DNA of 64,000 nucleotides, taken from the NCBI RefSeq assembly GCF_000143415.4, contig NW_003314265.1:3778443-3842442 (forward strand), read 5' to 3'. Positions 1 to 26,671 of the stretch are shown here, piece by piece; the first letter of the stretch is position 1, and the number at the start of each line of letters is the position of its first letter. Origin of the DNA: Selaginella moellendorffii. Its lineage: Eukaryota; Plantae; Lycopodiophyta. Made by a program: the position numbers and the translations under genes. Under the pieces are notes generated by a model, which did no database searches, was not told the origin of the DNA, and was given only the letters and a program-made list of their open reading frames with translations.

Positions 1-140
1 CGTTCTTCGTCATGGCCGCCACCTGTTTGTTTGGGTGTGCTCGCCGTGGCTCTCAGCTTGAGGTCCGCCAAGTTCTACAGTGCGGAGGTGAGGCCCAGCT
101 TGACGAGAAAAGTTGCTGCTGTTGTTGACGATGCATGCAC
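1..140 (+). pseudogene. 3' tail of nodulin-like MFS transporter copy A (damaged)
   Basis: Matches the 3' end of the copies at 7.3 and 16.1 kb. It has a 2-bp loss (gtgtgc-tcgcc vs gtgtgccatcgcc) and a deletion removing the TAG stop and the start of the 3' UTR (gatgcatgca|ctcgcaagagc). Confidence 0.8.
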
Positions 141-4308: not shown

Positions 4309-5482
4309 TCAAGCCACATAGACATTCTTCCCGGAGAAGTGCTCCGTGTACACCTCATGCATGTAATCCCTATAAGTCCTGCTGCGGTACTTTGCCGGAC
4401 TCTCCTGGCTCACCAGCTCTGAAATTGGGCTGATCTCCGCGTCTAGTGACGGCCCCAGGAATGCCCCGACGGACAGCCTTGAGCTCTTCGAGTTCACCAT
4501 CATCATGTGCAATATGCTCTTGTATCTCCCATTGCTCAGCTTATGATACAAGACAATCAACCAAGACAAAGATCAATCCACAGTTTCTCAAAACGTTTTC
4601 GACTGCTCGTACCTCTAGCTGGTCGCCCATGTTGACCACCAGCATTCCCTCGAGTGGCCTCACGTTGTACCAATCCTCGCCTTGCTTCAGCTGCAATCCC
4701 CTGGAGCACAAACGTGAGGCCGCCGCTGTCGGTGTGGCCTTCCATGCCCAAGGCCTGCCTCGGGTTCGGGCAAGCCAGATAGAAGTTTGCTCTCGTCAGA
4801 AGAACCATGTCTCCGAATGCTTCCAGAAGACGGTTTGAGCGGAGGCCAAGTCCCTCGGACATGACCAACAGCATCCTCTTCCCGAGCTTGAAGATGTTTC
4901 TGGCGTACTCGGATCCAACGTCCCTGTTGCGTATAGCGCGTCAGCAATCTAGCTCAATACCATAATCAAGGAACGAGAAACTGACTTGTAGCTGGCTGGG
5001 AACGCGGGTCAGGGGTGCACTCCGAGGGACTCCTCCTTGAGCCACATCTGGAGGTGGTCGTGCCACTCGAGCTTCTCTTCTTTCGAAGGCATCATGCTGG
5101 TGCAGTAGCGGACGGGTGTGAAGATCTCCTCGGTGTAGTATCACATCTTGTCCTCGCTGGGCGAAGTGAAGAACTCGAGAGCGCACCTCATCAAATCCTC
5201 GGTGTGAATTCCGTGGTTCTTGAGCTGCAAGTCAGAAGAACAACAACTTAGCAAACATGTACTACAGGAAAAAGACACCTCATCAAAACTTACGTAGAAC
5301 ATTCCGTACTTTGTGCAAGCGAGAGCTTCGAGATCCGTCTCGAAGCTCTCGCTTGCCACATCGACTATCGGCAGCACCGCGTACCGGGAGACATCGGCAG
5401 CTTCATTCGGCATCATGTATCTGTCTGGAACGCTGTCCAGCGTCCCATTGCAGCTGTCAACAAATGCCTTGATGCCAGCCAT
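4309..5482 (-). pseudogene. 2OG-Fe(II) dioxygenase (DOXC class) copy 1, pseudogene
   Basis: Same 4-exon structure as copies 2 and 3. It has CGA>TGA at 5141-5143, TGG>TGA near 5010 and an 11-bp frameshifting deletion near 4700. Confidence 0.9.
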
Positions 5483-5952
5483 GGATGGGACTGTGTAACC
5501 AAGAAAGCTTGAAAGATGAAAGATGGAAATGTATGCTTGGATGCTAGGCTTTCTCAACTTTGAGATGCGGATATCAGTGTCCTCCCAGTGCCCTGCTTAT
5601 ATAGTTGCAAAAAATAAGATTTGCACGAAGATGATAAGAACGTTACCATTGCGCCGATTCCGGATCCGCCCCCGCTCAAGACCATTTTGTAGACTTTTCC
5701 GTACCCGTGACTTGACCAGCGTCCGCATCTGGCCCTGCCCCAGATCCACATCAAGCGTCAATGCTCAACTTAGTTGACCCACGACATAGAAAATTTGGAG
5801 CCACGAAACTTCGGAATTGTCACGTTTTTGTATCGAACAGGAAAGATCGTCGACGCAAGTCCGGTCGTGGCACGGACTGCAAAAACAAAAGCCTTTGCAT
5901 AAAGCACGATGATTTTATAGAGCTTTCTTGTTACCTCACAGCGCTGGCGGCA
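5483..5952. promoter_or_regulatory. Shared divergent promoter, unit 1
   Basis: 470 bp between the divergent ATGs. Minus-strand TATATAAG at ~5596-5603. Near-identical to 24421-24895. Confidence 0.65.
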
Positions 5953-7328
5953 ATGGCGCTAGCAATGGCCAAGGAACTCTTCTCCATCGCCAGCAATCGC
6001 TGGATCATCGCAGTGTCGGGCTTCTATCTGATAGCAATCACCGGAGGCACGCTCACCAGCTTCAGCTTGTTCTCACAGGAGCTCAAAGTCTCCCTGCATT
6101 ACAAGCAAGAGTCCGTCAATACCATCAGTTTTTTCAAGGATCTCGGCACCAGCATGGCTTTCCTGGCCGGCTTGCTCAATGCGAGAGTCGGACCCCGTCT
6201 CACCATGTTCGTCTCCGCATTGCTCAACTTGTTCGGCTACACCATGGCCTGGCTCGCCATCACCCACCGGCATGGCAAATGAGCTTCTATATGTTTCTCG
6301 TCGGCGCCTCTGTAGGCTTTGCAGTCACGGCTGTCCTGTCGACCTGTGCCACGAACTTCCCCAAACATCACGGGATGCTGCTGAGCTTGCTGGACGGCAG
6401 CAATGACCTGGGAGCAACCACATTCGCGGTTGTGTTCCAGACTTTCTTCCAGTTCCACGCTCGCTCCTTTCTGCTCTTCGATAAGTCTAAAGCTCAGCTC
6501 GCGGATATGAATTCCACCCCGAGTGCTCTGCAAGTCGTTGACCATTCTCCTTCTCAAGCTTCCGGCGCTGGCAGCTGCAGATGGTTCCAAGTTCCAGCGA
6601 GAGGGAAGGACTACAGGCTCGTCCACGCCTTGCTGAGCATCGATATGTGGCTCATGCTCATCGCAACTTCCTTCGGCCTGGGAACCGTGTCCACCTTCTA
6701 CAATAACTTGGGCCAGCTGAGCGCCTCCCTGGGACACTCCACCGCAAGGATGAACATCTTCGTGGCTCTCCTCAACATCTGGGACTTCCTGGGAGCAATC
6801 GGCTGCGGCTTCGTGTCCGAGATACTCCTCCACAAGTTTGGCATTGGACGGCCGTTCGTGTTCGCTGCGGTGGTCGGCTTTCTAGCGCTCGGCAACTTGC
6901 TCATCGCCTTGGGCCTTCCCGGGGCGCTATACATCGGCTCTATCATCATCGGCCTCGCCACCGGAGGCCAGTGGGCGGTGCTGTCGACCATCATCGCGGA
7001 GATCTTCGGGCTCAAGCACTATGGAGTTCTCCAGAGCTTCCCAAACATCGCAAAGGGGATTGGGACGTATGTCCTGTCGGTGGAAGTTGCGGGTGTGTTC
7101 TACGATCGGCAAGCCAGGAGATACCGGGGCCCTGACACGCTGGAGGCTTCGCTCCTGTGCCAAGGTGCCAAGTGCTACAGGGAAACGTTCTTCGTCATGG
7201 CCGCCACCTGTTTGTTTGGGTGTGCCATCGCCGTGGCTCTCAGCTTGAGGTCCGCCAAGTTCTACAGTGCGGAGGTGAGGCCCAGCTTGACGAGAAAAGT
7301 TGCTGCTGTTGTTGACGATGCATGCTAG
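5953..7328 (+). pseudogene. Nodulin-like MFS transporter copy B, pseudogene
   Basis: A 16-bp frameshifting deletion between caccgg direct repeats (~6268) and a ~375-bp internal deletion (~6479) relative to copy D. Confidence 0.88.
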
Positions 7329-8123
7329 CAGAGTCTTGCATTTTTAAGCTACACAAGAAAAGGAAAGAAAATATGAGTGCGTCTTAAACAAAAGAACTCG
7401 CAAGAGCGACCGAATGGTTTCTCCTAGAGTGAGCTAAACAAGACACTCCAGCGCCAAATCCACCCGAGTTTCAGATGATTCTTACCTCGTGAATGGATGA
7501 GCGATCCCGCAATGCGCCGCTTGCCTAGGATCCATGTTCCATGAGCTCTGTGCCCTGCTTGACCATCGTTTACTCCCGCCAAGTTAAAACCAACGTCATG
7601 CTAGTTGACCAAATATGGTACTTTAAACCGGCTCTGATCATGTGCAGATACCTTATTCAAGCTTCTTGGTTTTTCATTCCATTGTGCCAAACCATGCAGT
7701 AAAAAGTGAAGTTAATATCAACATTACCTAGTGGCGCAAACAATCGGCCCTGCGTGATTGCTGTGCTAATGCTTCTCCGCAGAAAAAGGCTCCGAATGCG
7801 CTTTTTCATCCACACACTCCATCTGCCGATGTAACAACCAAAAAGAAACATTGAGCACCGCCCGAGGCACCAGCTGCAAGCCTTGAATGCCGTGAGCACC
7901 AGCGACCTCTGGAGAAATCTCTCGATTCCCCGATGCACGAGTTGTAGAAGCGCTTCCTGCCCCAGCACCTCCCAGATCCATGAGCTATAGAAGTGTTTCC
8001 TTGATCATCGATTGGGAGCTGCTCTTGTTGCCCGCACCACAGGTTGTCGCGGTCCTTGATCGAGCTCCCAGTGCGGAATTTGGCGTCCAGCTTGCTGGGT
8101 TCATCTTGTATCGCTTGCTCTTT

Positions 8124-8510
8124 ATCCCAGGCCAAAAGAAATGCCTCTTCACCAACATATACGTTCTCAATACCCCCGGATGCCCAGCACTTGGCACATC
8201 ATGACATTCAACCAAAATCCGTTTGATGAGTTTGTCAACACGAGGAACCACAACACGTCCCTTCTTCACCAGGATTCCATCTCGTATTTCGAATGACGCA
8301 AACTTGTCACCCTTCAAATCTGTAGAGGCGTCCCTCAACAAAACCTTCGCGCGAATATCAGTGATAAAGGAGTCAAAGTCAGCAAACTCCTTAAGCTCAT
8401 CCAAGAGATCGCTAGATAGCTTCACAAACGAGATAGAATTTACCATCCTAGATAATGCATCAGCCACCTTATTATCACCTCCATGCTTGTACCGGATCTT
8501 AATAGACATT
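8124..8510 (-). mobile_element. Inverted 387-bp gypsy RNase H/integrase fragment with 13-bp flanking duplication
   Basis: Reverse complement of ~10013-10399. Flanked by tcgcttgctcttt at 8111-8123 and 8511-8523; the empty site is single-copy in the other spacers. Confidence 0.9.
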
Positions 8511-8755
8511 TCGCTTGCTCTTTGGTGCAATAGATCTACAAAAAAGTGGTTTCTCGGAGAATCAACAAAGCATTTTCAAGAGAAAGATCTGCCCAAACAA
8601 CTTAAGAAATGGTTGACACGAACCACGGGAATATTCTGAGAATATTCTATGCCCTGTGGGATTTAAGGCCGTAACGCCTTAAGGGTTGGGAGGTTGGCCT
8701 AGGGTTCGCTCTCTTGTTCGTTTCATTGGTATCGGAGCAGCACGTTCTTTTGGGG

Positions 8756-9751
8756 ATGGCGGGTGAGCAAGATATTGATCCTGATGAGGAGTATGGCGTT
8801 AATGAGGATAGCCATGACGATGCGGAAGAGACTTTTGATGATGTTGTTGTGCGGCAGGGACGCCAAATTTCTGCAGTTCAGAGCGACATAAAAGAGGTTA
8901 AGGATTCTATCAATCTCATTAAGGATTTCTTGCTTCGCATGAACCCTCAAGGGTTGAATCAATCTCATGTCCGTGATTACCATTGGTACGTCAAGCATGC
9001 CAAGGATTATGGTATCATGGAATGGAAATCATCACCGGATGTTTGTGATAATCAAAAGGTTGATTCTTGGTTGGAATTGTGGGAAAGTTGTTGGTCTCAC
9101 AATCCTTGTGAGGATAAGGTAAAGATAGATTTCTTTGTGACGAAGCTTACGGGCCATGCTTCTTCGTGGTGGAAGAACTACATCAAAGCTAATCCGACGC
9201 CGACGTTTTGGACTGATTTGACAAAGGTTTTCTGCACTTCGTTTGTCAAGAAGTTTGAAGAGGTTGATCTTGTGAATCAGTTGTTAGAGATCCGGCAGGG
9301 GACTTTGTCTTTGGATGCGTATGCCCGCAAGTTCCGTGATCTTTGCCTTAGTCTCACGAGCACCTATAATGAGTTGCTAAAGGTGCAATGTTTTATCAAA
9401 GGATTGAGCTCAGTGGATGTGCAGTAGAAGGTCAAGAAGGATTTTCCAGCAACATTGACTGATGCTATCACTAAGGCTCAGATCTTTTCGCCCGAACCGT
9501 CAGTCAACTCGGTCAACTCTGGTCAACGAGATAGTCCACGGAGTAGTCAACGTGATGACCAGCTTGCTAATTCTTCATATTCGGGGAAGAAACGGTCGTT
9601 ATTCCGTTGTGGCTCGAAGCATGAAGATGGTAGTGAAGCTAAGAAACTTCGTTTGGACCAGCGAGAGAAAGACAAGGCGGAGGGCAATTGTTTTCGTTGC
9701 CATAGAGCTGGACATCAGAGCAAGGATTGTTCTGAAGGGGTCAATGAATGA
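8756..9751 (+). pseudogene. Gypsy gag with CCHC zinc knuckle, one premature stop
   Basis: Retrotrans_gag-like KLTGHASSWW..QGTLSLDAY and CFRCHRAGHQSKDC. TAG at 9425-9427. Confidence 0.85.
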
Positions 9752-9829
9752 TAAGGTGACTGTGGTGGAAATTATAGGCAATGATGTGAGTGATAATGCT
9801 TTTGAGGCCGTATTGCTTCAAGTTAGGCA

Positions 9830-11600
9830 TTCTCTCGCCTTCATGAGCCACAAGTTTGATATCACACAGCAGAATTGACCTACTCAAGAATGGCGACATT
9901 ATTTATATGGATCGGACTTCCATGTGGATTCAGACCATCAATCTCTCCAATATTTCAGTTGACAAAAGGATCTTCGAGGCCACCTTGCTCGTTGGCAAGA
10001 GTTCCTGCAGGAAATGTCTGTTAAGATCCGGTACAAGCATGGAGGTGATAATAAGGTGGCTGATGCATTATCCAGGATGGTAAATTCTATCTCGTTTGTG
10101 AAGCTATCCAGCGATCTCTTGGATGAGGTTAAGGAGTTTGCTGACTTTGACTCCTTTATCACTGATATTCGCGCGAAGGTTTTGTTGAGGGACGCCTCTA
10201 CAGATTTGAAGGGTGACAAGTTTGCGTCATTCGAAATACGAGATGGAATCCTGGTGAAGAAGGGACGTGTTGTGGTTCCTCGTGTTGACAAACTCATCAA
10301 ACGGATTTTGGTTGAGTGTCATGATGTGCCAAGTGCTGGGCATCCGGGGGTATTGAGAACATATATGTTGGTGAAGAGGCATTTATTTTGGCCTGGGATG
10401 AAGTCAGATGTTGAGAAGTACGTACGTGGTTGTTTGACCTGCCAGGCGGTCAAAATTGATCATCAGAAGCTTGCTGGCCTCTATCATCCTTTACGTGTAC
10501 CCGAGAATAAGTGGGATAGCATCTCGATGGACTTTATCACTGGTTTGCCCAAAACCTTTCGAGGAAATGATGCTATTTGGGTTGTTGTGGATTGCTTGAC
10601 GAAGATGGCTCACTTCTTCCCTGTGAAGACAACGATAAAAGCTTCTGAACTTGCTCAGTTGTTTGTAGACCGGTTATTCAGTCTCTATGGTTTGCCGGGT
10701 GACATTGTGAGTGATCGGGATCCTAAGTTCACGTCCAAGTTTTGGCAAACGGTCTTTGAGAAACTAGAGACTAAACTGAGCATGAGTAGTGGTGAGCATC
10801 CACAATCTGATGGGCAGACAGAGCGCATGAATTAGCTATTAGAAGATATGCTACGGTCTTTTGTGGGAAACTTGACTCGACAAGGAGTATGGGAAAAATA
10901 CTTGCCTTTGCTTCAGTTTGCTCACAATAGCGCTCATCAATCGGCTATTGGCATGTCTCCTTTTATGGCGATGTATGGCTATGAGCCTAGGTCTCCTGTG
11001 AGTTTGAATTTGGCTTTAGTTCGGGTTCCTCATGCTTGTGATTTCCTGGAGGATATGCAAGACAAGCTTGAGTTGGCAAAATTGAACATGAGGCAAGCTC
11101 AAGAACGAGACAAAAGATTGGCTGATGAGCATCGTCATCATCAAGAGTACAAAGTTGGTGACAAGGTTTTCCTTAAGCTGTCGGATACACAACGGTCTCT
11201 AAAAAGAGGTGGCAGTGCTAAGTTGTCTCCACGGTATTGTGGACCTTGGACAATTTTACAGCGTGTAGGGGATCTTGCATACACTTTGGACTTGCTAGTT
11301 AGTTCGAAGATTCATTCAACGTTCCATGTGAGCAAGCTTAAAGCGTGTTTGCACTCTAGTGATATCGTGGATCAGTCCATCATCCAGGTTCCAGAGATTG
11401 ATGCAGAGAAGGCTGGTCCGGCCAATATTCTTGCTCAAAGATTGGTGAAAACACGCCGGAAAACAACTAGGGAGTTGTTAGTTCAGTGGAATGGTTATTC
11501 CATGGACGAAGCTACATGGGAAACTGAGGATGACGTGAAAAGAGTGTTTCCGAGTTTTGGTTATGACTTGGATGACATTCCTAAAGAAGGGGAGAATTGA
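9830..11600 (+). pseudogene. Gypsy RNase H remnant, integrase and chromodomain
   Basis: ADALSR, HDVPSAGH..CLTC, ISMDFITGLP, VSDRD, HPQSDGQTER, GPW motif and C-terminal chromodomain. TAG at 10833-10835. Confidence 0.9.
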
Positions 11601-12719
11601 GTTCTATAGCCGTATTGCTATATGATTTGAGCCGTTTGTTCTATTCTCATTCTCTTGTTTTCCATGACCGTATTGTCATGTGAGAAAGCCGTATTGCTTT
11701 CTTTCTTTCGTGACCGTTTGTTGCGACGTTGGTGTTGCCGTTTGCACATCTTTTCTCCATGGCCGTATTGCCTTGGACTCCCTTCATTTGAGGCTCGTTT
11801 AACTTCTCGAGGCTACCATATGTGGTTGGGTCATGAGGGAGGGGAGAATGACACGAACCACGGGAATATTCTGAGAATATTCCATGCCCTGTGGGATTTA
11901 AGGCCGTAACGCCTTAAGGGTTGGGAGGTTGGCCTAGGGTTCGCTCTCTTGTTCGTTTCAGATGACGTGGCGCGCTGCCAACCCAAGTGGAGCGTCACAT
12001 CAACATTGATTGTTTACTACTCATTCCACATGACAATATTATGGAGCAAACATCTCTTCAGCTTTCTGAAGAAATTTGTTCTTCGAAGTGATGGGTTTGT
12101 GCTTAGCGATGTTATGGCTGAAACTAGCTGTCAGTTACTTAGGATTAAACATGCATTCAACACCGCACACTGCAGTATGTGTTGCGTTGGGGGTGAGCTG
12201 ATCTATGACACTGTCTCTGGGTTTAAATTTTCGCATGTTGAATTCTACAAATGAGTCAACGAAAGTTAATGTAGCGTTGGGAGGACAAATCAACAAGCAA
12301 TACCTCCAGAAATACCATTTGTGTTACTTTTATGTGTTGATCAACAGATACAAAGAAAATGAAAAGAAAGAGTGCTTTTCGTGAGGACTTTCACCTCGGT
12401 CATATCATTCTGGTACCTCAAAACTTCTTTGCTGCCTTGAAGAAATGATGAGAGCTTACATAATAAGAAGCTTCATATGACTTTCGTATGTCTTTCATAT
12501 TGTGATTCTAAATAGTTATATTGCTTAACAATACATTGCTGGACTTCCTCCCAGATTGTTAAACTTTTACAATCTTCTAGGCAGCAAACAATCGGCTTGC
12601 TATGAAATTTCTTATCTCTGTATAATATTGTGATAATATCTTTGCTTATCAAACTAAGATCCTTGTGAGCAAACATTTCTTGCAACTGTTTTATTTGTGT
12701 GCCTTTGACTACCCAAGGC

Positions 12720-13893
12720 TCAAGCCACATAGACATTCTTCCCGGAGAAGTGCTCCGTGTACACCTCGTACATGTAGTCCCTATGAGTCCTGCTGCGGTA
12801 CTTTGCCGGACTCTCCTGGCTCACCAGCTCTGGAATCGGGCTGATCTCCGCGTCTAGTGACGGCCCCAGGAACGCCGCGACGGACAGCCTCGAGCTCTTC
12901 GAGTTCACCATCACCCTGTGCAATATGCTCTTGTACCTCCCATTGCTCAGCTTCTGAGATCACCAACCAAGGACAACACTAAGATCATTCCACAAACTTT
13001 TCGACTGCTCGTACCTCTAGCTGATCGCCCATGTTGACCACCAGCATTCCCTCGAGTGGCCTCACGTTGTACCAATCCTCGCCTTGCTTCAGCTGCAATC
13101 CCCCGACTCCATCCTGGAGCACAAACGTGAGGCCGCTGCTGTCGGTGTGGCCTTCCATGCCCAAGGCCTGCCTCGGGTTCGGGCAAGCCGGATAGAAGTT
13201 TGCTCTTGTCAGAAGAACCGTGTCTTCGAATGCTTCCAGAAGACGATTTGAGCGGAGGCCAAGTCCCTCGGACATGCCCAACAGCATCCTCTTCCCGAGC
13301 TTGAAGATGTTTCTGGCGTACTCGGATCCAACGTCCCTGTTGCATATAGAGCGTCAGCAATCTAGATCAATACGAAAATTCAAGGAGCGAGAAACTGACT
13401 TGTAGCTGGCTGGGAACGCGGGCCAGGGGTGCGCTCCGAGGGACTCTTCCTTGAGCCACATCTGGAGGTGGTCGTGCCACTCGAGCTTCTCTTCTTTCGA
13501 AGGCATCATGCTGGTGCAGTAGCGGACGGGTGTGAAGATCTCCTCGGTGTAGTATCGCATCTTGTCCTCGCTGGGCGAGTTGAAGAACTCGAGAGCGCAC
13601 CTCATCAAATCCTCGGTGTGAATTCCGTGGTTCTTGAGCTGCAAGTCAGAAGAACAACAACTTAGCAAACATGTACTACAGGAAAAAGACACCTCATCAA
13701 AACTTACGTAGAACATTCCGTACTTTGTGCAAGCGTCAACGAGATCCCTCTCGAAGCTCTCGCTCGCCACATCGACTATCGGCAGCACTGCATACCGGGA
13801 GACATCGGCAGCTCCATTCGGCATCATGTATCTCTCCGGAACGCCCGACAGTGTCCCGTTGCAGCTGTCAACAAATGCCTTGATGCCAGCCAT
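12720..13893 (-). CDS. 2OG-Fe(II) dioxygenase (DOXC class) copy 2, 4 exons, apparently intact
   Basis: DIOX_N start (LPIVDV..ACTKYGMFY|LKNHGI), NFYPACP, HTD and distal H iron triad, RLS 2OG-binding motif, GT-AG introns. Confidence 0.9.
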
Positions 13894-14410
13894 GGATGGG
13901 ACTGTGTAAGCAAGAAAGCTTGGAAGACGAAAGATGGAAATGGAAATGTATGCTTGGATGCTAGGCTTTCTCAACTTTGAGATGCAGATATCAGTGTCCT
14001 CCCAGTGCTCTGCTTATATAGTTGCAAGAAAATAAGATTTCTAGTTGGCAGTACGAATTTAAGAACGTTACTTATTACACGTTATTTGCACGAACTTTCC
14101 ATCCATTCAAGACCAATTTGTAGACTTTTCCGTCTCAATGACAGATTAGCGTTCGCATCTGCTAATCTGTCACTGATATGGAAAATGCAGTGAACGCTCA
14201 AATTGGTTGACCGGCACATAGAAAACTTAGCCACGAAACTACGTTATTGCCAAGTTTATGTCAAACTCTCTGCTTGAAGAAGCTTGCCATTTCAAAGAGC
14301 ATCACATGGACTGCAATTATAACAAAATATAAAGGCATGAAAACCATGACTATGAAGAGCTTTCTCGTTACCTTGTGCGGTCCACAAAGCTGGCAGCAAC
14401 GACGCTAGCA
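13894..14410. promoter_or_regulatory. Shared divergent promoter, unit 2 (diverged type)
   Basis: 517 bp between the ATGs. The 2OGD-proximal part with TATATAAG is conserved; ~14040-14400 is clearly diverged from units 1 and 3. Confidence 0.6.
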
Positions 14411-16102
14411 ATGGCCAAGGAACACTTCTCCATCGCCAGCAATCGCTGGATCGTCGCAGTCTCAGGCTTCTACTTGATAGCAATCACCGGAGGCACGCTC
14501 ACCAGCTTCAGCTTGTTCTCACAGGAGCTCAAAATCTCCCTGCATTACAAGCAAGAGTCCGTCAATACCATCAGCTTCTTCAAGGATCTTGGCACTAGCA
14601 TGGCTTTCCTAGCCGGCTTGCTCAATGAGAGAGTCGGCCCCCGTCTCACCATGTTCGTCTCCGCATTGCTCAACCTGTTCGGCTACACCATGGCCTGGCT
14701 CGCCATCACTCACCGGATTGCTCGTCCACCGGCATGGCAAATGAGCTTCTATATGTTTCTCGTCGGCGCCTCTGTAGGCTTTGCAGTCACGGCTGTTCTG
14801 ACCACCTGTGCCACAAACTTCCCGAAACACCACCAGGGGATGCTGCTGAGCTTGCTCGACGGCAGTAATGGCCTGGGAGCAACCGCATTCGCGGTTGTGT
14901 TCCAGACTTTCTTCCAGTTCCACGCTCGCTCCTTTCTGCTCTTCCTGGGGCTGCTACCGACGTTCCTGTATCTGCTGCTTGGCCTCTTCCTCGGGCCCGT
15001 GCCTGTCATCGAGAAGTCCAGCGACAAGTCCATTCTCCGCTCATTCCTCATCACCACCTTTGCCTTAGCTGCCTATCTCCTCGTCATCACAGTCATCGAG
15101 GGGAGCATGACAAGCAGGCTTCCAGACTCGGTGCCTTTGGTGTTCTTTGGTTTGATGCTGCTCATCGTCCTACTTCCAGTTCCTCTGGTTGTCCGAGCTA
15201 AGATTCGATCACATTCGAACAGTGCTGGTGCTGTCGAAAGCATACCGCCATCTCATAACTCTGAAGCTCAGCTCGCGGATATGAATTCCACCCCGAGTGC
15301 TCTGCAAGTCGTCGACCATTCTCCTTCTCAAGCTTCCGGCGCTGGCATCCACAGATGGTTCCAAGTTCCAGCGAGAGGGAAGGACTACAGGCTCGTCCAC
15401 GCCTTGCTGAGCATCGATATGTGGCTCATGCTCATCGCAACTTCTTGCGGCCTGGGAACCGTGTCCACTTTCTACAACAACTTGGGCCAGCTGAGCGCCT
15501 CCCTGGGATACTCCACCGCAAGGATGAACATCTTCGTGGCTCTCCTCAACATCTGGGACTTCCTGGGAGCAATCGGCTGCGGCTTCGTGTCCGAGATACT
15601 CCTCCACAAGTTTGGCATTGGACGGCCGTTCGTGTTCGCTGCGGTGGTCGGCTTTCTAGCGCTCGGCAACTTGCTCATCGCCTTGGGCCTTCCCGGCGCG
15701 CCGTACATCGGCTCCATCATCATCGGCCTCGCCACCGGAGGCCAGTGGGCGGTGCTGTCGACCATCATCGCGGAGATCTTCGGGCTCAAGCACTATGGAG
15801 TTCTCCAGAGCTTCCCAAACATCGCAAAGGGGATTGGGACGTATGTCCTGTCGGTGGAAGTTGCGGGTGTGTTCTACGATCGGCAAGCCAGGAGATACCG
15901 GGGTCCGGACACGCTGGAGGCCTCGCTCTTGTGCGACGGTGCCAAGTGCTACAGGGAAACGTTCTTCGTCATGGCCGCCACCTGTTTGTTTGGGTGTGCC
16001 ATCGCCGTGGCTCTCAGCTTGAGGTCCGCCAAGTTCTACAGTGCGGAGGTGAAGCCCAGCTTGACGAGAAAAGTTGCTGCTGTTGTTGACGATGCATGCT
16101 AG
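14411..16102 (+). CDS. Nodulin-like (NFD4-like) MFS transporter copy C, intronless, intact
   Basis: NRW..FSLFSQELK..LHYKQESVNTISFFKDLG, NFP..GMLLSLL, NNLGQL, EIFGLKHYG, C.GAKCY and about 12 hydrophobic segments. The upstream ATG used in copies B and D is ACG here. Confidence 0.92.
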   Translation: MAKEHFSIASNRWIVAVSGFYLIAITGGTLTSFSLFSQELKISLHYKQESVNTISFFKDLGTSMAFLAGLLNERVGPRLTMFVSALLNLFGYTMAWLAITHRIARPPAWQMSFYMFLVGASVGFAVTAVLTTCATNFPKHHQGMLLSLLDGSNGLGATAFAVVFQTFFQFHARSFLLFLGLLPTFLYLLLGLFLGPVPVIEKSSDKSILRSFLITTFALAAYLLVITVIEGSMTSRLPDSVPLVFFGLMLLIVLLPVPLVVRAKIRSHSNSAGAVESIPPSHNSEAQLADMNSTPSALQVVDHSPSQASGAGIHRWFQVPARGKDYRLVHALLSIDMWLMLIATSCGLGTVSTFYNNLGQLSASLGYSTARMNIFVALLNIWDFLGAIGCGFVSEILLHKFGIGRPFVFAAVVGFLALGNLLIALGLPGAPYIGSIIIGLATGGQWAVLSTIIAEIFGLKHYGVLQSFPNIAKGIGTYVLSVEVAGVFYDRQARRYRGPDTLEASLLCDGAKCYRETFFVMAATCLFGCAIAVALSLRSAKFYSAEVKPSLTRKVAAVVDDAC

Positions 16103-16495: not shown

Positions 16496-19400
16496 TATTA
16501 CACGACACACCCTTGCCACGTGTCCATTAGGGTTTTCCTGTTCTGTCCACTATGATCCCGATTTGTCTCATGGTATTGGAGCTGGGATAGCGCCATGGAA
16601 GGAAAGCCATCCATCCGCAAGTTTGATGGAGAAGGGTTTGAGGGATTCAAAATCCATCTTGAATCCTATCTCTTATTTTATGGTTTGTTGGGGATTGTAG
16701 ATGGGACAGAGTCATCACCGGCTCCAGGCTTTAGCGCTGTTGAGGTGCGTGATTGGAACCTTCGGGATTCCAAGGCTAGAGGGAGTATTGCAATGTGCTT
16801 GTCCTCAAATGTTCTCTTTGCTGCCCCATCGATTCCAAAGTCCACTGCGGCAGAGCTTTGGAAGTGGTTGAGTGACACTTATGGCACCAAGAGTGAAATG
16901 GATGTCTTCAACATCCATTCACAAATGGATTCCTTGAGGCTAGAGGAAAATGGCAATATCCAGACTCACACCGCCAAGCTCCAGGGCTTCTTCACACAAC
17001 TTGCAGCTGCTGGGGCGAAGCACTGTCTCACAGATGAGCAGCAGAGGCTGCAGCTCTACAGGTCCTTGCCAGCAAGCTGGAAGAATGCAGTTGAGAGCCA
17101 ACTTCTCCAACCAAGGATGACTTGGGCAGATGCCGTGAGGAGTCTTCGCAACATTGAGGCCATGCGAAGTGAGAGAGTTGAAATGCCACAGGCTATGTAT
17201 GCTTCGCAGGCTTCTGGTGATGCCCAGGTGGCAAAACCGCATGCAGCTGCAAATGCCCAGAAAGGGCAAAATTCTGTGGCATCTGGGCGTGCCAAGCCCA
17301 AACTTGCTAAGAATCAGTGTGCTTGCTGCTTGGAGATGGGCCACTGGGCTCGAGATTGCCTTGCTCCCAAACCTGTCAAGCGACTAGCTACATTGGCGAA
17401 AGCTAATTTTCTTGAGCGTGATGGAATTGCTACTGCAAATGAGGTTGTTGAGGAGCTCTACAACGCAGAGGCAATTGCCGCACCAAGCCGGTGGCTCTTA
17501 GACTCTGGTTGTACTAATCTTATGAGCAATAAGAAGAGTCTTTTTGAGTGTTATCAGCCAAGCATTGGAAAATGTGGTGTTCATTTAGGTGATAATACCA
17601 CCATCCATGTGGACGGCATCAGGCAATTCTGGCTCTCACTCGATCATGGGAGGACCATGGCCTTTGATGGTGCCATGCATGTTTCCACCTTGCGACGAAA
17701 CTTAATGTCCGTCGCCAAGATATGTGATCAAAATGCGGTGGTAGTCTTTGATGTGAAGGGAGTCTCTTTAGTTGACTCTAGTGACTTTCAAATGCTTGGT
17801 ACACAGTTGCTTCGTAGGTCACGCATTGGGGATTTGTATGAGATTACTGCTATCGACCCAATTTAGGCCTTTCAGACTGTGGAGGCAGATTCTCGTGCGG
17901 AGCTTTGGCATAAAAGACTTGGTCATGTTCATTACCAATCTCTTCAACGGATGAAATCCCAAGATATTGTTACTGGATTGGATTTTCGACGTATCTCATC
18001 TACATTTTGTGAAGCTTGTGTTTTAAGCAAGCATCACTGCCGGAATTTCTCACCGAGTAAGCATCGAGCACTTGGACTTCTGGACTTAGTCCATTCTGAT
18101 CTTTGCGGCCCCATGGACGTGCCAAGTCACGATGGCGCAAGATATTTCATCACATTCATTGATGACTATAGCCATCGAACATGCATCCACTTCTTGATGC
18201 GTAAAAGTGATGCAATTGCTGCCTTTCAAACGTATAAGGTGTACATTGAAAACCTCCTTGGTCGAAAGATAAAAGCTCTTCGAGTTGATGGTGGTGGTGA
18301 ATACCTCAACAATGAGCTTCGGGGCATCTGTCGTGATGTAGGCATAAGACTGCAAGCTACAGCCTGCTACACCCCCCAGCAAAATGGTGTTGCAGAAAGA
18401 AAGAATCATACTCTTGTCAATGCTGCTCGTGCTTTGTTAACTAATGCACATCTTGACAAGATGTTTTGGCAAGAGGCCATAGCCACAGCAATGCATGTAC
18501 AAAATCGCCTTGCCACGGCTGCTTTGGATGGAAAAACCCATGAGGCATTTTGGACAGGTTCTACTCCTGATGTGTCCCACTTTCAGGTCTTCGGTTGTGC
18601 AGCATATGCACATACCCTTGATCAACTTTGGAAAAAGCTAGATCCCAAGAGTAAAAAATTCATCTTCATAGGATATGCATAGGACAACACTATCGGGAGA
18701 AAAGCTTACAAGTTGTGGGATCTTGCATCTCACAAGGCTATTGTAAGCACAGATGTCATGTTCAATGAAGACGACTTTCCCATGCGTACAGAGGCTCTTC
18801 AAGATCCTTCCTTTATTGCTGAGACTTGACTTGTTCCTTTGATCCCACTTATGGGAGATGGTCCACTCTTGCCTCCGCCTCAAGATCCTATTCATGAGTT
18901 GCCACCAGAGATTCCATTGTGGAATCCTCCACTTCTGGACATGCTTGAACCAGCTGATCCTCCTCTAGTTGAGGACAGGCCTCCAACACCTCCACCACCT
19001 TGTCGACGTCGTGGCATGCCTGATCCGATGCCAGTTCTTGATCACCCCTGGGAACGTCAGCCCTCGTTAAAAGTCCGGGAAAATGCTGAAGCAGATGCTG
19101 CAGAGCTTGATGACTTTTGTGGCCTTGTTGACATCGGCATCCCCATGACCTATGATAAGGCCATCTTAGGACCTGAGGCTTCATCTTGGATGGAAGCTAT
19201 TGCGGAAGAAGTTTCTTCCATTCGGGCTAACGGAACTTATGTTCCAGTTGATTTAGCGCCACCGGGACGACGTGTTTTGGATCCAAAATGGATTTTTTCC
19301 AAAAAGTATGGGAAGATGGCCAGGTTGTACGTTATAAGGCACGGTTGGTTGTTCGCGGTTTTTGCCAAGTCCATGGCCTTCACTACGATGAAACATTCTC

Positions 19401-20878
19401 ACCGGTTGTAAAAATGGCCAGCCTCCATACTCTTTTTGCCCTTGCGGCTGCTCGCAAATGGCAAGTCCACCATATGGATGTCAAAACTGCATTTCTGAAT
19501 GGGGATTTGCAAGAGGACATCTATATGCATATACCTCCTGGTTTTGAGGACGATGTTGCCCTTGGTAGCCTTATATGGCAATTGCGGAAAGCTTTGTATG
19601 GCTTAAAACAGAGCTCCTGTATTTGGTATCAAAAATTTGATGCCACCCTACGTGCTCAAGGCTTTCGTCGCTGTTATGCTGATCACAATGTGTATGTCAA
19701 TGGTCATGCTGAGTGCATGGTTATTGTGGCCCTCTACGTTGATGATTTGCTCATCATGGGTGATGACAACGATGCCATTGCTGCTCTGAAAGATGCTCTC
19801 AGCCAGCAATTCCAGATGAAGGACCTTGGCCAAGTCTCCTACTTTCTTGGCTTTGAAGTCACATGTGATCTTGATTCTGGTGGCTACATGCTTAGCCAAC
19901 GACGTAAAGTTGAAGTCTTGCTGGATCGGTTTGGTATGCGTGATTGCCACCCCATCAAGACCCTGATGGTCATTGGTGCTATCGACCTCACAGTTGAGCA
20001 GTCTGGTGATCTTCTACCCACTGGGACTCCCTATTGGCATCTCATTGGTTGCCTCACATATTTGGCCCTGATGACTTGCCCCGACATCACATATGTGACT
20101 ATTGCCTTGAGTCAGTACAACACATCACCAACCACCATACATTGGCAAGCTACCAAGCGTATCGTGAGATACCTTCGGGGCACTATGGATTATGGCATTG
20201 CTTATTCAGGGGGTGATGCATCATTAGCATGTTACACAGATGCTAGTTTTGCCAACAACAAAGGTCATCACTCGACTTCTGGCATTTGCCTTTCCTTCTC
20301 AGGAAGTGCCATCACGTGGGCCTCCAAGCGACAATCTGTGGTGGCCCTTTCTAGTGCAGAAGCGGAGTGCATCGCACTCACTACTGGTAGTAGGGACGTG
20401 GTCTGGGCTCGAGGGTTACTTGCTAAGCTGGGATGTGCATGAGCTGGCCCCACTACTTCTTGGTGTGACAACCGAAGCAGCATTGCCATGTCCAAGAACC
20501 CCGTCCACCATGCCCGCTCGAAGCACATTGAAGTCCAATTTCACTACGTGCGTGAGTTGGTTGACGGGGGCACCCTCGCCGTCCAACATCTCGGGACACA
20601 GGATATGCCAGCCAATCTTCTCACTAAGCCGTTGGGGTCACACCAGTTTCAGCTCCTACATGACAGATTTGGTTTGGTGAGTGGCTTCGGTTTGGGGGGG
20701 AGTGTTACACGACACACCCTCGCCACGTGTCCATTAGGGTTTTCCTGTTCTGTCCGCTAGCGGGGTGAGTGGCTTCGGTTTGGGGGGGAGTGTTACACGA
20801 CACACCCTCGCCACGTGTCCATTAGGGTTTTCCTGTTCTATCCGCTAGCGCGGTGTGCTTTGATCCCGATTTGTCTCA
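16496..20878 (+). mobile_element. Ty1/copia LTR retrotransposon with mini-LTRs, full domain set but disrupted
   Basis: 5-bp TSD aacat (16491-16495, 20879-20883). 5' LTR 16496-16570 and 3' LTR 20791-20878. PBS tggtattggagc; PPT gggggggag. Gag CCHC, protease LLDSGCT, LWHKRLGH, integrase, RT YVDD and RNase H in copia order. Stops at 17864 and 18680 plus frameshifts. Confidence 0.96.
20676..20851 (+). repeat. 88-bp tandem duplication of PPT plus partial 3' LTR
   Basis: 20676-20763 is repeated at 20764-20851, with ggtg microhomology at the junction. Confidence 0.9.
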
Positions 20879-23238
20879 AACATTACCTAGTGGCGCAAAC
20901 AATCGGCCCTGTGTGATTGCTGTGCCTTCTCTGCAGAAAAAGGCTCCGAATGGGCTTTTTCATCCACCCTAACTTGGGAATCACAAGCTCCATCTGCCAA
21001 TGTAACAACCAAAAAGAAACATTGAGCACCGCCACCAGCTGCAAGCCTTGAATGCCGCGAGCACCAGCGACCTCTGGAGAAATCTCTCGGTTCCCCGATG
21101 CACGAGTTGTAGAAGCGCTTCCTGCCCCAGCACCTCCCGGATCCATGAGCTATAGAAGTGTTTCCCTGATCATCGATTGGGAGCTGCTCTTGTTGCCCGC
21201 GCCACAGGTTGTCGCGGTCCTTGATCGAGCTCCCAGTGCGGAATTTGGCGTCCAGCTTGCTGGGTTCGTCTTGTAGCGCTTGCTCTTTGGTGCAACAGAT
21301 CTAGAAAAAAGTGATTTCTCGGAGGATCATCAAAGCATTTTCAAGAGAAAGATCTGCCCAACAAATGGTAGCCGATGACGTGGCACGCTGCCAACCCAAG
21401 TGGAGCGTCACATCAACATTGGTTGTTTACTACTCATTCTACATGACAATATTATGGAGCAAACATCTCTTCAGCTTTCTGAAGAAATTTGTTCTTCGAC
21501 GTGATGGGTTTGTGCTTAGCGATGTTATGGCTGAAACTAGCTGTCAGTTACTTAGGATTAAACATGCATTCAACACCGCACACTGCAGTATGTGTGGGGT
21601 GAGCTGATCTATGACACTGTCTCTTGGTTTAAATTCTCGCATGTTGAATTCTACAAATGAGTCAACGAAAGTTAATGTAGCGTTGGGAGGACAAATCAAC
21701 AAGCACTACCTCCAGAAATACCATTTATGTTACTTTCATGTGTTGATCAACAAATACAGTAGACCTGAAACAGGAGGTTCAAGAAAAGGAAAAACCCCTT
21801 GGAAGTTATTTTACTAACCTTGAAGTAGGGATGATGCCTAAGCATTTTTCCATGGTATTCATGATGGTAGAACTTATAATGTTCTCAATGTTTATCCTAG
21901 TGTGAGCAACAATTCTACCCATAATGTTCATGTCAATGTGCGTGGAGTTAAGGATGTCAGCATACTATCAGTTCAGTGAACTAACTTTTACATGAAAATA
22001 TGAATACTTATGAAACTTGAACATAGAATATTTACCTCATTCATCATAGCCAATTAGAAATTGTCATCTTTTGTATATTTAGTAGCTCTTGTAGTAGGAT
22101 CACTGAATGGCTCAATCACAGGGTTTTGCAGGAACTTTATCCCATGTATGTATGTTATCTGATAGCTTGCCAAGTTGCACACGAACAAGCTCTAGATGGA
22201 TCCATGAATTTGACTTCACCCATGTTGAGTGCCCCACATGTGGGAGCTAATCCGATGTTTAAGATAGTCTTGGACATTCGAGTTGACAATGTTGACCTAT
22301 CTATTAGTCAAATGCTAGCTAAAACTGAATGTGAAAGTCAAAATGCTAGATGATATTTCCAAATACTTACAATCAGCTGAAACTAGGCATTTGTGCTCAA
22401 GACAAAGCTCATAACAGCAAGAAGAATGATTGATGGGACTTTTGCCAAAGCTTACCCGGTGCTACTGGAGCATATTCTGTAAGGAAGTGGATATGTTGGC
22501 CAGTAGGGAGTGGAGTCCAGGTGTGATTCAGCCGGGCAAAAGGGACTTGTATACGACATTCAACCGTATTAATCTTACCTCTGTAACTTTGGATATACCA
22601 AAGCATAACGGGCGAGGATTTGAACTGTACTTTCAACAAGCTATGACCAACGTAGCTGTTTCATAGACATAAGCCCGTGTGGTTTTGTGTCATGGTTTCT
22701 TGTGTTGATCTTCTAGTGACTTGCAGATTTCTCTATGAGTTCGCCCTCGATCAATATCTAGGTCTTGCTGAAAACTGCAGGCAAAAATTTCTCAACTATC
22801 TATCGAAGTTCAAGTTGCTGAGGGATGGCAGCTGAAAATCTCAAGAAAATGAAAAGAAAGAATGGACACCTGCTGGGAAACCACTGCTTTTGGTGAGGAC
22901 TTTCACCTTAGTCATATCATTCTGGTACCTCAGAGCTTCTTCGCTGCCTTAAAAAAATGATGAGACTTTATATAATAAGAAGCTTCGTATGTCTTTCATA
23001 TTGTGATTTTAAAAAGTTATATTGCTGAACAATACATTGCTGGACTTCCTCCCAGATTGTTAAACTTTTACGATCTTCTACGCAGCACACAGTCGGCTTG
23101 CCATGACATTTCGTACCTCTATATAATATTGTGATAAAATCTTTGCTTATCAAACTAAGATCCTTGTGAGCAAACATTTCTTGCAACTGTTTTATTTGTG
23201 AGAATGAGAAAAAATTGGTGCCTTTGACTACCCAAGAC

Positions 23239-24420
23239 TCAAGCCACATAGACATTCTTCCCGGAGAAGTGCTCCGTGTACACCTCGTGCATGTAATCCC
23301 TATAAGTCCTGCTGCGGTACTTTGCTGGACTGTCCCGGCTCACCAGCTCTGGAATCGGGCTGATCTCCGCGTCTAGTGACGGCCCCAGGAACGCCCCAAC
23401 GGACAGCCTTGAGCTCTTCGAGTTCACCATCACCCTGTGCAATATGCTCTTGTATCTCCCATTGCTGAGCTTCTGATACAAGACAATCAACCAAGACAAA
23501 GATCAATCCACAGTTTCTCAAAACGTTTTCGACTGCTCGTACCTCTAGCTGATCGCCCATGTTGACCACCAGCATTCCCTCGAGTGGCCTCACGTTGTAC
23601 CAATCCTCGCCTTGCTTCAGCTGCAATCCCCCGACTCCATCCTGGAGCACAAACGTGAGGCCGCCGCTGTCAGTGTGGCCTTCCATGCCCAAGGCCTGCC
23701 TCGGGTTCGGGCAAGCCGGATAGAAGTTTGCTCTCGTCAGAAGAACCATGTCTGCGAATGCTTCCAGAAGACGGTTTGAGCGGAGGCCAAGTCCCTCGGA
23801 CATGACCAACAGCATCCTCTTCCCGAGCTTGAAGATGTTTCTGGCGTACTCGGATCCAACGTCCCTGTTGCATATAGAGCGTCAGCAATCTAGAGCAATA
23901 CCGTAATCAAGGAGTGAGAAACTGACTTGTAGCTGGCTGGGAACGCGGGCCAGGGGTGCGCTCCGAGGGACTCTTCCTTGAGCCACATCTGGAGGTGGTC
24001 GTGCCACTCGAGCTTCTCTTCTTTCGAAGGCATCATGCTGGTGCAGTAGCGGACGGGTGTGAAGATCTCCTCGGTGTAGTATCGCATCTTGTCCTGGCTG
24101 GGCGAGTTGAAGAACTCGAGAGCGCACCTCATCACATCCTCGGTGTGAATTCCGTGGTTCTTGAGCTGCAAGTCAGAAGAACAACAACTTAGCAAACATG
24201 TACTACAGGAAAAAGATCTTTCTTGAAAACTTACGTAGAAAATTCCGTACTTTGTACAAGCGTCAACGAGATCCCTCTCGAAGCTCTCGCTTGCCACATC
24301 GACTATCGGCAGCACCGCGTACCGGGAGACATCGGCAGCTTCATTCGGCATCATGTATCTGTCTGGAACGCTGTCCAGCATCCCGTTGCAGCTGTCAACA
24401 AATGCCTTGATGCCAGCCAT
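23239..24420 (-). CDS. 2OG-Fe(II) dioxygenase (DOXC class) copy 3, 4 exons, intact
   Basis: HTDSGGLT, SILHRV and RLSV motifs; three GT-AG introns; no stops seen. Confidence 0.92.
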
Positions 24421-24895
24421 GGATGGGACTGTGTAACCAAGAAAGCTTGAAAGATGAAAGATTGTATGCTTGGATGCTAGGCTTTCTCAACTTTGAGATG
24501 CGGATATCAGTGTCCTCCCAGTGCCCTGCTTATATAGTTGCAAAAAATAAGATTTTCAGGTCGGCAGCACGAAGATGATAAAAACGTTACCATTGCGCCG
24601 ATTCCGGATCCGCCCCCGCTCAAGACCAATTTGTAGACTTTTCCGTACCCGTGACTTGACCAGCGTCCGCATCTGACCCTGCCCCAGATCCACATCAAGC
24701 GTCAATGCTCAACTTAGTTGACCCACGACATAGAAAATTGGAGCCACGAAACTTCGGAATTGTCACGTTTTTGTATCGAACAGGAAAGATCGTCCACGCA
24801 AGTCCGGTCGTGGCACGGACTGCAAAAACAAAAGCCTTTGCATAAAGGACGATGATTTTATAGAGCTTTCTTGTTACCTCACAGCGCTGGCGGCA
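24421..24895. promoter_or_regulatory. Shared divergent promoter, unit 3
   Basis: 475 bp between the ATGs, with minus-strand TATATAAG at ~24528-24535. Confidence 0.65.
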
Positions 24896-26671
24896 ATGGC
24901 GCTAGCAATGGCCAAGGAACTCTTCTCCATCGCCAGCAATCGCTGGATCATCGCAGTGTCGGGCTTCTACCTGATAGCAATCACCGGAGGCACGCTCACC
25001 AGCTTCAGCTTGTTCTCGCAAGAGCTCAAAGTCTCCCTGCATTACAAGCAAGAGTCCGTCAATACCATCAGTTTTTTCAAGGATCTCGGCACCAGCATGG
25101 CTTTCCTGGCCGGCTTGCTCAATGCGAGAGTCGGACCCCGTCTCACCATGCTCGTCTCCGCATTGCTCAACTTGTTCGGCTACACCATGGCCTGGCTCGC
25201 CATCACCCACCAGATTGCTCGTCCACCGGCATGGCAAATGAGCTTCTACATGTTTCTCGTCGGCGCCTCTGTAGGCTTTGCAGTCACGGCTGTCCTGTCG
25301 ACCTGTGCCACGAACTTCCCCAAACATCACCAGGGGATGCTGCTGAGCTTGCTCGACGGCAGCAATGGCCTGGGAGCAACCGCATTCGCGGTTGTGTTCC
25401 AGACTTTCTTCCAGTTCCACGCTCGCTCCTTTCTGCTCTTCCTGGGGCTGCTACCGACGTTCCTGTATCTGCTGCTTGGCCTCTTCCTCGGGCCCGTGCC
25501 TGTCGTCGAGAGGCCCAGCGACAAGCCCATTCTTAACTCGTTCCTCATCACCACTTTTGCCTTGGCGGGCTATCTCCTCGTCGTCACAGTCATCGAGGGG
25601 ACCATACCGAGCAGGCTTCCAGACTCGGTGCCTTTGGTGTTCTTCGGGTTGATGCTGGTCATCGTCCTACCTCCGGTTGTTCTGGTTGTCCGAGCTGAGC
25701 TTCGATCACATTCGAACGGTGCTGGTGTTGTCGATCAACTGCAAAGCATCCAGACACCACCGCCAACTGAGAAGTCTGTCGAGCAACTTGAAAGCATCCA
25801 CGCACCACCGCCAACTGATAAGTTTGAAGCTCAGCTCGCGGATATGAATTCCACCCCGAGTGCTCTGCAAGTCGTCGACCATTCTCAAGCTTCCGGCGCT
25901 GGCAGCTGCAGATGGTTCCAAGTCCCGGCGAGAGGTAAGGACTACAGGCTCGTCCACGCCTTGCTGAGCATCGATATGTGGCTCATGCTCATCGCGACTT
26001 CCTGCGGCCTGGGAACCGTGTCCACCTTCTACAACAACTTGGGCCAGCTGAGCGACTCCCTGGGATACTCCACCGCAAGGATGAACATCTTCGTGGCTCT
26101 CCTCAACATCTGGGACTTCCTGGGAGCAATCGGCTGCGGCTTTGCGTCCGAGATACTCCTGCACAAGTTTGGCATTGGACGGCCGTTCGTGTTCGCTGCG
26201 GTGGTCGGCTTTCTAGCGCTCGGCAACTTGCTCATCGCCTTGGGCCTTCCCGGCGCGCTGTACATCGGCTCCATCATCATCGGCCTCGCCACCGGAGGCC
26301 AGTGGGCGGTGCTGTCGACCATCATCGCGGAGATCTTCGGGCTCAAGCACTATGGAGTTCTCCAGAGCTTCCCAAACATCGCAAAGGGGATTGGGACGTT
26401 CGTCCTATCAGTGGAAGTTGCGGGTGTGTTTTACGATCGGCAAGCCAGGAGATACCGGGGCCCCGACACGCTGGAGGCCGGGCTCTTGTGCCACGGTGCC
26501 AAGTGCTACAGCGAAACCTTCTTCGTCATGGCCGCTACCTGTTTGTTTGGGTGCGCCATCGCCGTGGTTCTCAGCTTGAGGTCCGCCAAGTTCTACCGTG
26601 CGGAGGTGAGGCCCAAGTTGATGAGAAAAGTTGCTCCTGCTACTGTTGACGATGGAGTCCAGTCATGCTAG
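24896..26671 (+). CDS. Nodulin-like (NFD4-like) MFS transporter copy D, intronless, intact, 591 aa
   Basis: Same motifs as copy C in an uninterrupted ORF. Confidence 0.93.
   Translation: MALAMAKELFSIASNRWIIAVSGFYLIAITGGTLTSFSLFSQELKVSLHYKQESVNTISFFKDLGTSMAFLAGLLNARVGPRLTMLVSALLNLFGYTMAWLAITHQIARPPAWQMSFYMFLVGASVGFAVTAVLSTCATNFPKHHQGMLLSLLDGSNGLGATAFAVVFQTFFQFHARSFLLFLGLLPTFLYLLLGLFLGPVPVVERPSDKPILNSFLITTFALAGYLLVVTVIEGTIPSRLPDSVPLVFFGLMLVIVLPPVVLVVRAELRSHSNGAGVVDQLQSIQTPPPTEKSVEQLESIHAPPPTDKFEAQLADMNSTPSALQVVDHSQASGAGSCRWFQVPARGKDYRLVHALLSIDMWLMLIATSCGLGTVSTFYNNLGQLSDSLGYSTARMNIFVALLNIWDFLGAIGCGFASEILLHKFGIGRPFVFAAVVGFLALGNLLIALGLPGALYIGSIIIGLATGGQWAVLSTIIAEIFGLKHYGVLQSFPNIAKGIGTFVLSVEVAGVFYDRQARRYRGPDTLEAGLLCHGAKCYSETFFVMAATCLFGCAIAVVLSLRSAKFYRAEVRPKLMRKVAPATVDDGVQSC

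Follow-up and report, generated by a model that had tools for sequence, protein, structure and literature searches.

Why should a gene for an oxygenase and a gene for an unrelated membrane transporter be found side by side again and again in a plant genome? The question is raised by a stretch of 64,000 nucleotides from the lycophyte Selaginella moellendorffii (NCBI RefSeq assembly GCF_000143415.4, contig NW_003314265.1, positions 3,778,443 to 3,842,442 of the forward strand), hereafter called the window, whose numbering is used for all coordinates given without a locus name. The window contains three tandem units, each composed of a minus-strand gene for a 2-oxoglutarate/Fe(II) dioxygenase of the DOXC class and a plus-strand gene for a nodulin-like transporter of the major facilitator superfamily (MFS), arranged head to head and thus divergent. 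Analysis of this locus and its relatives characterises the pair as a conserved, divergently transcribed two-gene unit of Selaginella, and the structural and evolutionary parts of this conclusion are solid.

An earlier note, made from the sequence of the window, had described the DOXC gene plus an intronless MFS gene as the unit of amplification, with at least three pairs between 4309 and 26671. Self-BLAST, repeat finding and Pfam searches agree with this description, and the two limits coincide with the 3' end of the unit-1 DOXC gene and the stop codon of the unit-3 MFS gene. The repeat units are 89-98% identical across kilobases, as determined by self-BLAST and a repeat finder. The distances between start codons in units 1, 2 and 3 are 470, 505 and 475 bp, inside the previously claimed range of 470-517 bp. 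The pairs had been called back to back; the pairing holds, while the orientation is head to head and unit 1 is a double pseudogene. The components of the three pairs are the following.

4309..5482, minus strand: DOXC gene of unit 1, a pseudogene (tblastn with the paralogue P0079; alignment-based integrity check)
5953..7328, plus strand: MFS gene of unit 1, a pseudogene that has lost 16 nt and 375 nt in two deletions and has its first stop at codon 109
12720..13893, minus strand: DOXC gene of unit 2, intact, 326 codons, exons 13893-13708, 13638-13399, 13335-13015 and 12953-12720, with the HxD..H and RxS motifs present
13894..14398, no strand: intergenic region of unit 2 (505 bp)
14399..16102, plus strand: MFS gene of unit 2, intact, 567 amino acids, short-loop form
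23239..24420, minus strand: DOXC gene of unit 3, intact, 326 amino acids, exons 24420-24235, 24165-23926, 23863-23543 and 23472-23239
24421..24895, no strand: stretch between the start codons of unit 3 (475 bp), the DOXC-proximal ~135 bp being well conserved among copies and the remainder variable
24896..26671, plus strand: MFS gene of unit 3, intact, 591 amino acids, long-loop form, its reading frame covered by unspliced RNA contigs

In Pfam searches, the plus-strand open reading frames (ORFs) matched Nodulin-like, MFS_1 and NFD4_C, with PF06813 matched at 1-249 of its 250 positions and PF23262 at 14-213 of 215. The minus-strand ORFs matched DIOX_N and 2OG-FeII_Oxy, both of which are also carried by the reference gene models of the array. 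For the enzyme the exon ORFs were searched individually, with the database paralogue P0079 as a proxy for the full-length sequence; its identity to the unit-3 DOXC protein is 96%. The DOXC gene consists of four coding exons separated by short introns; those of unit 3 (69, 62 and 70 nt) have GT..AG borders, and all three are backed by RNA contigs. The segments GHTDSGG, ILHRV and SRLSV, which hold the HxD...H iron triad and the RxS 2-oxoglutarate-binding motif, are kept in units 2 and 3, as they are in the reference copies. Unit 1 has ILHMM in place of ILHRV, two in-frame stops, an exon-3 frameshift with an 11-nt loss and a spoiled acceptor site of intron 3.

The same pair was found at two further loci of the reference genome. 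In an exhaustive HMMER search, the closest relative of the MFS protein was P0082 of S. moellendorffii (45% identity), encoded on scaffold GL377588.1 at locus L005, where a minus-strand DOXC gene and a plus-strand MFS gene stand head to head 503 bp apart. The closest in-genome relatives of the enzyme are located on GL377588.1 as well, and P0238 (locus L009, 200 kb from L005) is again paired, here with the MFS gene on the minus strand and the DOXC gene on the plus strand, 526 bp apart. The copies of the array are referred to below as lineage A and the pairs at L005 and L009 as lineage B (B1 and B2). Lineage B proteins are ~45% identical to those of lineage A, each being the nearest in-genome relative of its counterpart, and on the phylogenetic tree the MFS lineages A and B are sisters with a support of 100/100. 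The start codons are separated by 470-542 bp in lineage A and by 503-526 bp in lineage B.

The segment common to B1 and B2 is 3.5 kb long and contains just the two genes; synonymous divergence (dS) between the two loci is 0.148 and 0.158, matching for both genes, and the ratio of nonsynonymous to synonymous divergence (dN/dS) is 0.18 and 0.13. Outside this pair, loci A, B1 and B2 have no flanking gene in common. Another Selaginella NFD4-like gene is without a DOXC neighbour, and the linkage is therefore specific to this MFS clade. Because the pair recurs at two additional loci whose proteins are mutual nearest relatives of those in the array, the cassette is an old unit, inherited as such, whose genes were duplicated together and which has been copied and kept at least three separate times, with divergence down to ~45% protein identity. 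Joint duplication applies to the ancient A/B split, to the B1/B2 event, to the tandem array and to the dispersed copies.

Both genes of the pair are transcribed. The RNA evidence consists of contigs from four runs of four studies, placed at 97% likeness or above. In these contigs all three introns of the DOXC coding region are removed at GT..AG sites of the minus strand, from which it follows that the contigs represent RNA, and one of them fits the unit-3 DOXC gene with zero mismatches. DOXC and MFS are both covered in the same four data sets. Contig joints further define a long leader of the DOXC transcript.

24421..25172, minus strand: spliced 5' leader of the unit-3 DOXC mRNA (RNA contig joints in two to four runs; ORF analysis)

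The introns of the leader, all on the minus strand, are located at ~24525-24589, 24820-24877 and 25036-25145. With a length of at least 519 nt, the leader contains five upstream ORFs, and in-frame stops precede the DOXC ATG. In a single contig the first DOXC coding exon is joined to 24878-25037, a stretch antisense to codons 1-47 of the MFS gene, and the joint 25035 -> 25146 was seen in all four runs. Beyond 24896 the leader is antisense to the ~92 first MFS codons, overlapping the MFS ORF by 277 nt or more, and at least some DOXC transcripts begin beyond 25172, within that ORF. Since the DOXC leader runs antisense into the MFS coding region, the two transcription units overlap and are interlocked at their 5' ends.

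The MFS gene is covered by unspliced contigs over 25173-26699 with no plus-strand splice, which fits an intronless gene. Its word depth in two runs is several-fold above that of the DOXC contigs, pointing to a distinct MFS transcript, probably of sense orientation, although strand is unprovable from contigs. The MFS promoter must lie in 24421-24895. A simple bidirectional promoter restricted to this interval, for which the earlier note had proposed a reporter assay, is an incomplete account, as the DOXC leader starts beyond 25172, inside the MFS ORF. The term operon-like is not supported either: instead of same-strand genes in a polycistronic transcript, the pair has genes on opposite strands, separate transcripts and minus-strand DOXC splice sites. 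Excess constraint on the intergenic region was considered and rejected, as identity among copies is 84% there against 90% in the DOXC introns, apart from the ~135 bp beside DOXC. Similarity between the intergenic regions of lineages A and B was not above that of shuffled controls.

Two further observations concern transcripts of the locus. Of the 31-mers sampled from the unit-3 cassette, 45% occur in run X11 (study P5), which carries a different organism label (organism B); the run either stems from a very closely related organism or differs only in labelling. At L002 (11701-12171 and 20206-20676) a minus-strand gene of 110 amino acids without a Pfam match directly adjoins the stop codons of two MFS copies of the reference, and it could mark the start of an antisense transcript through MFS.

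To which enzymes is the DOXC protein related? On the phylogenetic tree, DOXC lineages A and B together with one Diphasiastrum gene form a lycophyte-only clade (support 98/96, without a resolved backbone), which stands apart from the proteins that RefSeq names DLO-like. RefSeq names such as 'DMR6-like oxygenase' are automatic labels. The best PDB matches are spread with similar scores over JOX2 (At5g05600), F6'H1, ANS and T6ODM. Kinship with enzymes of the F6'H/DMR6 type had been proposed on the basis of the peptide VRYCTSMMPSKEEKLEWHDHL. The peptide is indeed found in all three DOXC copies; this motif region is common to DOXC enzymes, and both the tree, which lacked characterised DMR6 and F6'H1 sequences, and the PDB ranking are unspecific, so that membership of this group was rejected. 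Judged from its sequence, the enzyme is a genuine, soluble 2-oxoglutarate/Fe(II) oxygenase of the DOXC class, in a clade specific to lycophytes and with no resolved tie to DLO-like, JOX-like or F6'H-like proteins. In the tree topology, which bears on the timing of the A/B split relative to Lycopodiaceae, DOXC lineage A falls outside a group comprising the Diphasiastrum gene and lineage B; an approximately unbiased test of Selaginella monophyly gave a borderline result (p = 0.046), and long branches are involved. PMC8839085, citing Kawai et al. (2014), gives S. moellendorffii eight species-specific DOXC groups and no members of the salicylate-hydroxylase cluster.

The MFS gene is placed inside the land-plant NFD4-like tree, within a lycophyte group, and its unit-3 protein is 99% identical to that of RefSeq LOC112342070 (P0001) of S. 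moellendorffii. Identity to other plant members is 33-38%, and the stem branch of the A+B clade has a length of 0.79, to which lineage A adds another 1.43. The predicted transporter is a Selaginella-specific, strongly diverged offshoot of the nodulin-like/NFD4 MFS family. In its central loop (25730-25810 and 25881 of the window; ~10880-10990 of L001) a repeat-like indel of 66 nt (22 amino acids) separates long (591/593 amino acids) from short (567 amino acids) forms. A 6-nt indel in the loop distinguishes the window from the reference allele, and an RNA contig of run X1 has the reference form.

Intact copies of both genes are under purifying selection. Pairwise dN/dS among the intact lineage-A DOXC copies of the window and the reference is 0.06-0.33 at a dS of 0.04-0.16, and divergent intact lineage-A MFS pairs gave 0.23-0.37; a value of 1.0 for two near-identical reference MFS copies rests on only 12 differences. 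Scaffold GL377663.1 of the reference (loci L001 and L002) bears the same array with another copy structure; it has at least six DOXC and five MFS genes, and two of these MFS genes are broken. Dispersed copies at L003 (= P0079) and L004 are called as lone DOXC genes. P0079 and P0081 were accordingly considered as solitary DOXC paralogues, and this was rejected, as blastn found decayed MFS remnants head to head with the enzyme genes. At L004 an inversion has split the MFS gene, and part of the adjacent SRP54 gene was carried along. This locus (9028-13328, GL377572.1) is a dispersed copy of the 3' end of the array, in which the inversion spans DOXC and the 5' part of MFS, leaving MFS 5' pieces on one side of DOXC and MFS 3' pieces with the SRP54 fragment on the other. 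Within the reference array, fragments of alanyl-tRNA synthetase (tRNA-synt_2c) were observed at 595-1853 and 15651-17229 of L002 (GL377663.1); one L002 gene model fuses such a fragment to 2OG-FeII_Oxy, and the adjoining DOXC copy R_L002c has a replaced 3' end.

The remaining parts of the array in the window are as follows.

1..145, plus strand: 3' tail of the MFS gene of a preceding unit, U0 (blastn, 3-133 against nt 1624-1759 of the unit-3 MFS gene, 90%)
139..4308, no strand: unit-1 spacer, repeated after every MFS gene but the last (self-BLAST)
8614..11960, plus strand: internally deleted Ty3/gypsy chromovirus in the unit-2 spacer (Pfam, repeats)
16497..20851, plus strand: Ty1/copia element between units 2 and 3 (Pfam, repeats)

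A fourth transporter tail had been noticed at 1-140, and the 90% match of 3-133 to the unit-3 MFS gene confirms it; the array runs on upstream beyond the start of the window. The base repeat is ~7.3 kb long, and the gypsy and copia elements enlarge units 2 and 3. The gypsy element has 112-nt long terminal repeats (LTRs) at 99% identity and encodes gag, integrase and a chromodomain without protease or reverse transcriptase; it is young. Just upstream lies an inverted integrase fragment (8120-8512, 393 nt), 98% complementary to 10011-10403. In the copia element the ORFs for gag, integrase and reverse transcriptase are broken, and its LTR-like repeats are very short (~55 nt), the 3' one being tandemly doubled (20676-20763 and 20764-20851). 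A third gene within the repeat unit was considered and rejected, as a Pfam scan of all spacer ORFs of at least 70 amino acids matched no domain.

Past unit 3 the array stops and is followed by genes for SRP54, aldose epimerase, GT34 and patatin, as on the reference scaffold. Single-copy genes in this downstream part include an SRP54 exon ORF at 27324-27740 and a minus-strand GT34 glycosyltransferase at 33189-33992, and an intronless gene for a PPR protein of 559 amino acids is located at 38957-40636. Compared with L001, the single-copy flank (22987-36741) is only ~96% identical at the DNA level. The identity between haplotypes of S. moellendorffii is given as 98.5% (PMC8839085). The flank is more divergent than that figure, which may reflect unusually high polymorphism at this locus or the origin of the window from a different accession. 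With this identity and the differing copy structure, the window represents another haplotype or assembly of the species than the reference scaffold.

The array was most likely built through unequal crossing-over. Given the loss of MFS copies, the transposons and the structural difference between assemblies, it reads as birth-and-death turnover through pseudogenisation and retrotransposon insertion. The dosage selection invoked in the earlier note is not supported, given the pseudogenes, the transposon insertions and a structure unlike that of the reference scaffold.

What, then, has kept the two genes together? One answer is that both products act in one pathway, the MFS carrying the substrate or product of the enzyme and the 5' ends coupling expression; in our estimate the case for this is evenly poised. 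On this view the oxygenase would act on a small molecule, which would probably be a hormone-like acid or else a specialised metabolite of phenolic or carboxylic type, the MFS would move the substrate or product of the enzyme across a membrane, and the shared control region of ~0.5 kb with the overlapping leader would couple DOXC and MFS expression. It is also quite possible, though we lean away from it, that functionally unrelated neighbours were copied jointly through their 0.5-kb closeness, that each was kept separately and that the array is neutral birth and death. Genes 0.5 kb apart are copied jointly and remain adjacent without selection, which makes joint copying and lasting adjacency the default. 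Several other observations likewise weigh for passive co-duplication and against a common pathway. The array has pseudogenes and transposons and differs between assemblies, and its intergenic region is less identical among copies than the DOXC introns and has no excess conservation. Recent lineage-A copies lose MFS more often than DOXC (R_L001a, R_L002a, L003 and L004), and the L003 DOXC gene is still under purifying selection beside a dead MFS. The linkage expected to be conserved was recovered at two further loci in the genome and not in Diphasiastrum, where the nearest DOXC gene (L008) and MFS genes (L007 and L010) have no partner within 10 kb according to gene calls and tblastn, and two such genes on one chromosome lie 5.7 Mb apart. 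The co-regulation proposed earlier agrees with transcription of both genes in the same four data sets, but contigs carry neither strand, transcript level nor expression correlation. Finally, literature searches included, we know of no nodulin-like MFS protein that carries a specialised metabolite. Joint long-term retention of unrelated genes after duplication should, however, be rare, and here both genes are intact and adjacent in both old lineages (~45% identity) and again in B1 and B2, whose common segment is trimmed to exactly two genes; moreover, the lineage-A proteins of both genes are on long stem branches.

A more ambitious form of the one-pathway reading seems rather unlikely: that the pair has been a self-contained oxidise-and-move module since early Selaginella or longer, handling a secreted or vacuolar phenolic, an iron-mobilising or a defence compound, with interleaved 5' ends that lock expression. 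The interlocked transcripts might also work in the opposite sense, the antisense DOXC leader acting by transcriptional interference or as a natural antisense RNA, so that the genes would be expressed alternately and the pair would be a regulatory switch. The leader runs antisense to the MFS ORF over 277 nt or more, its three introns and five upstream ORFs suggest regulated, poorly translated transcripts from a distal promoter, and two of the four runs lack a contig over the distal leader exon 24590-24819 despite a covered DOXC body, which is compatible with alternative promoters. We nevertheless hold such a switch to be very unlikely, since both genes are present in all four RNA data sets, even if contigs reveal neither strand nor level. 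A link through the cofactor, in which the MFS handles iron or an anion and the pairing serves Fe(II) supply or homeostasis for the oxygenase instead of product transport, is highly improbable. Legume N70 nodulins are anion transporters, and the DOXC enzyme of the pair needs Fe(II), as is evident from its facial triad; we know of no plant 2-oxoglutarate oxygenase needing a dedicated iron transporter. The nodulin-like MFS protein LIR1 of Leishmania is reported as an iron exporter (PMC6021107), but the kinship of LIR1 with the MFS of the cassette rests solely on a common Pfam family name.

Returning to the reading of one shared pathway, the closest parallel is the dhurrin cluster of sorghum with SbMATE2 (PMC5107947), where enzyme and transporter genes are also linked and expressed in the same samples, and where the idea is that the transporter handles the product. 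Unlike that cluster, the Selaginella pair comprises two gene types and a single enzymatic step, has a nodulin-like MFS instead of a MATE protein and is itself a unit duplicated many times, and its co-expression means presence in the same RNA samples only. A plant biosynthetic gene cluster is usually recognised by at least three co-localised, non-homologous genes of a single pathway, whereas A, B1 and B2 share two gene types. The cassette also resembles plant bidirectional gene pairs, which are divergent, less than 1 kb apart and often co-regulated and functionally related (PMC4997330, PMC5045660, PMC4035068). It has the head-to-head arrangement within 1 kb, but its transcription starts are not both intergenic: unlike pairs with a shared promoter, its DOXC leader starts in the ORF of the partner, and the pair is conserved through old paralogous duplications. 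As an enzyme family history, the array is comparable to the lineage-specific growth of DOXC oxygenases by local duplication, as described by Kawai et al. (2014; cited in PMC8839085), and to the tandem origin of Apiaceae FNS I from F3H (PMC9851555). The difference from known DOXC expansions is that the Selaginella repeat unit bears a second, unrelated gene, the MFS, retained with the enzyme. The transporter is like the NFD4/nodulin-like family (PF06813 and PF23262) in its full-length matches to both domains and its position inside the land-plant tree, and unlike other members in forming a Selaginella-only, strongly diverged subclade. A description of this DOXC-MFS pairing was not found in literature searches.

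To our knowledge, no organic substrate has been established for plant nodulin-like/NFD4 MFS proteins, and the majority of DOXC enzymes specific to lycophytes are orphans. Through a pairing that survives repeated rounds of duplication, each of the two genes acquires a concrete candidate partner: the substrate and product of the enzyme would be the first compounds to try on the transporter, and the location of the transporter may hint at the destination of the product. Should the linkage prove passive, the locus would be an ordinary tandem array with birth-and-death turnover. A small enzyme-transporter cassette that duplicates as a unit and has interlocked transcripts is also relevant to the origins of metabolic gene clusters in plants. 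If the oxidise-and-move reading is true, the pair would count as a minimal cluster of enzyme and transporter genes in a lycophyte and would provide a first handle on the cargo of NFD4-type MFS proteins.

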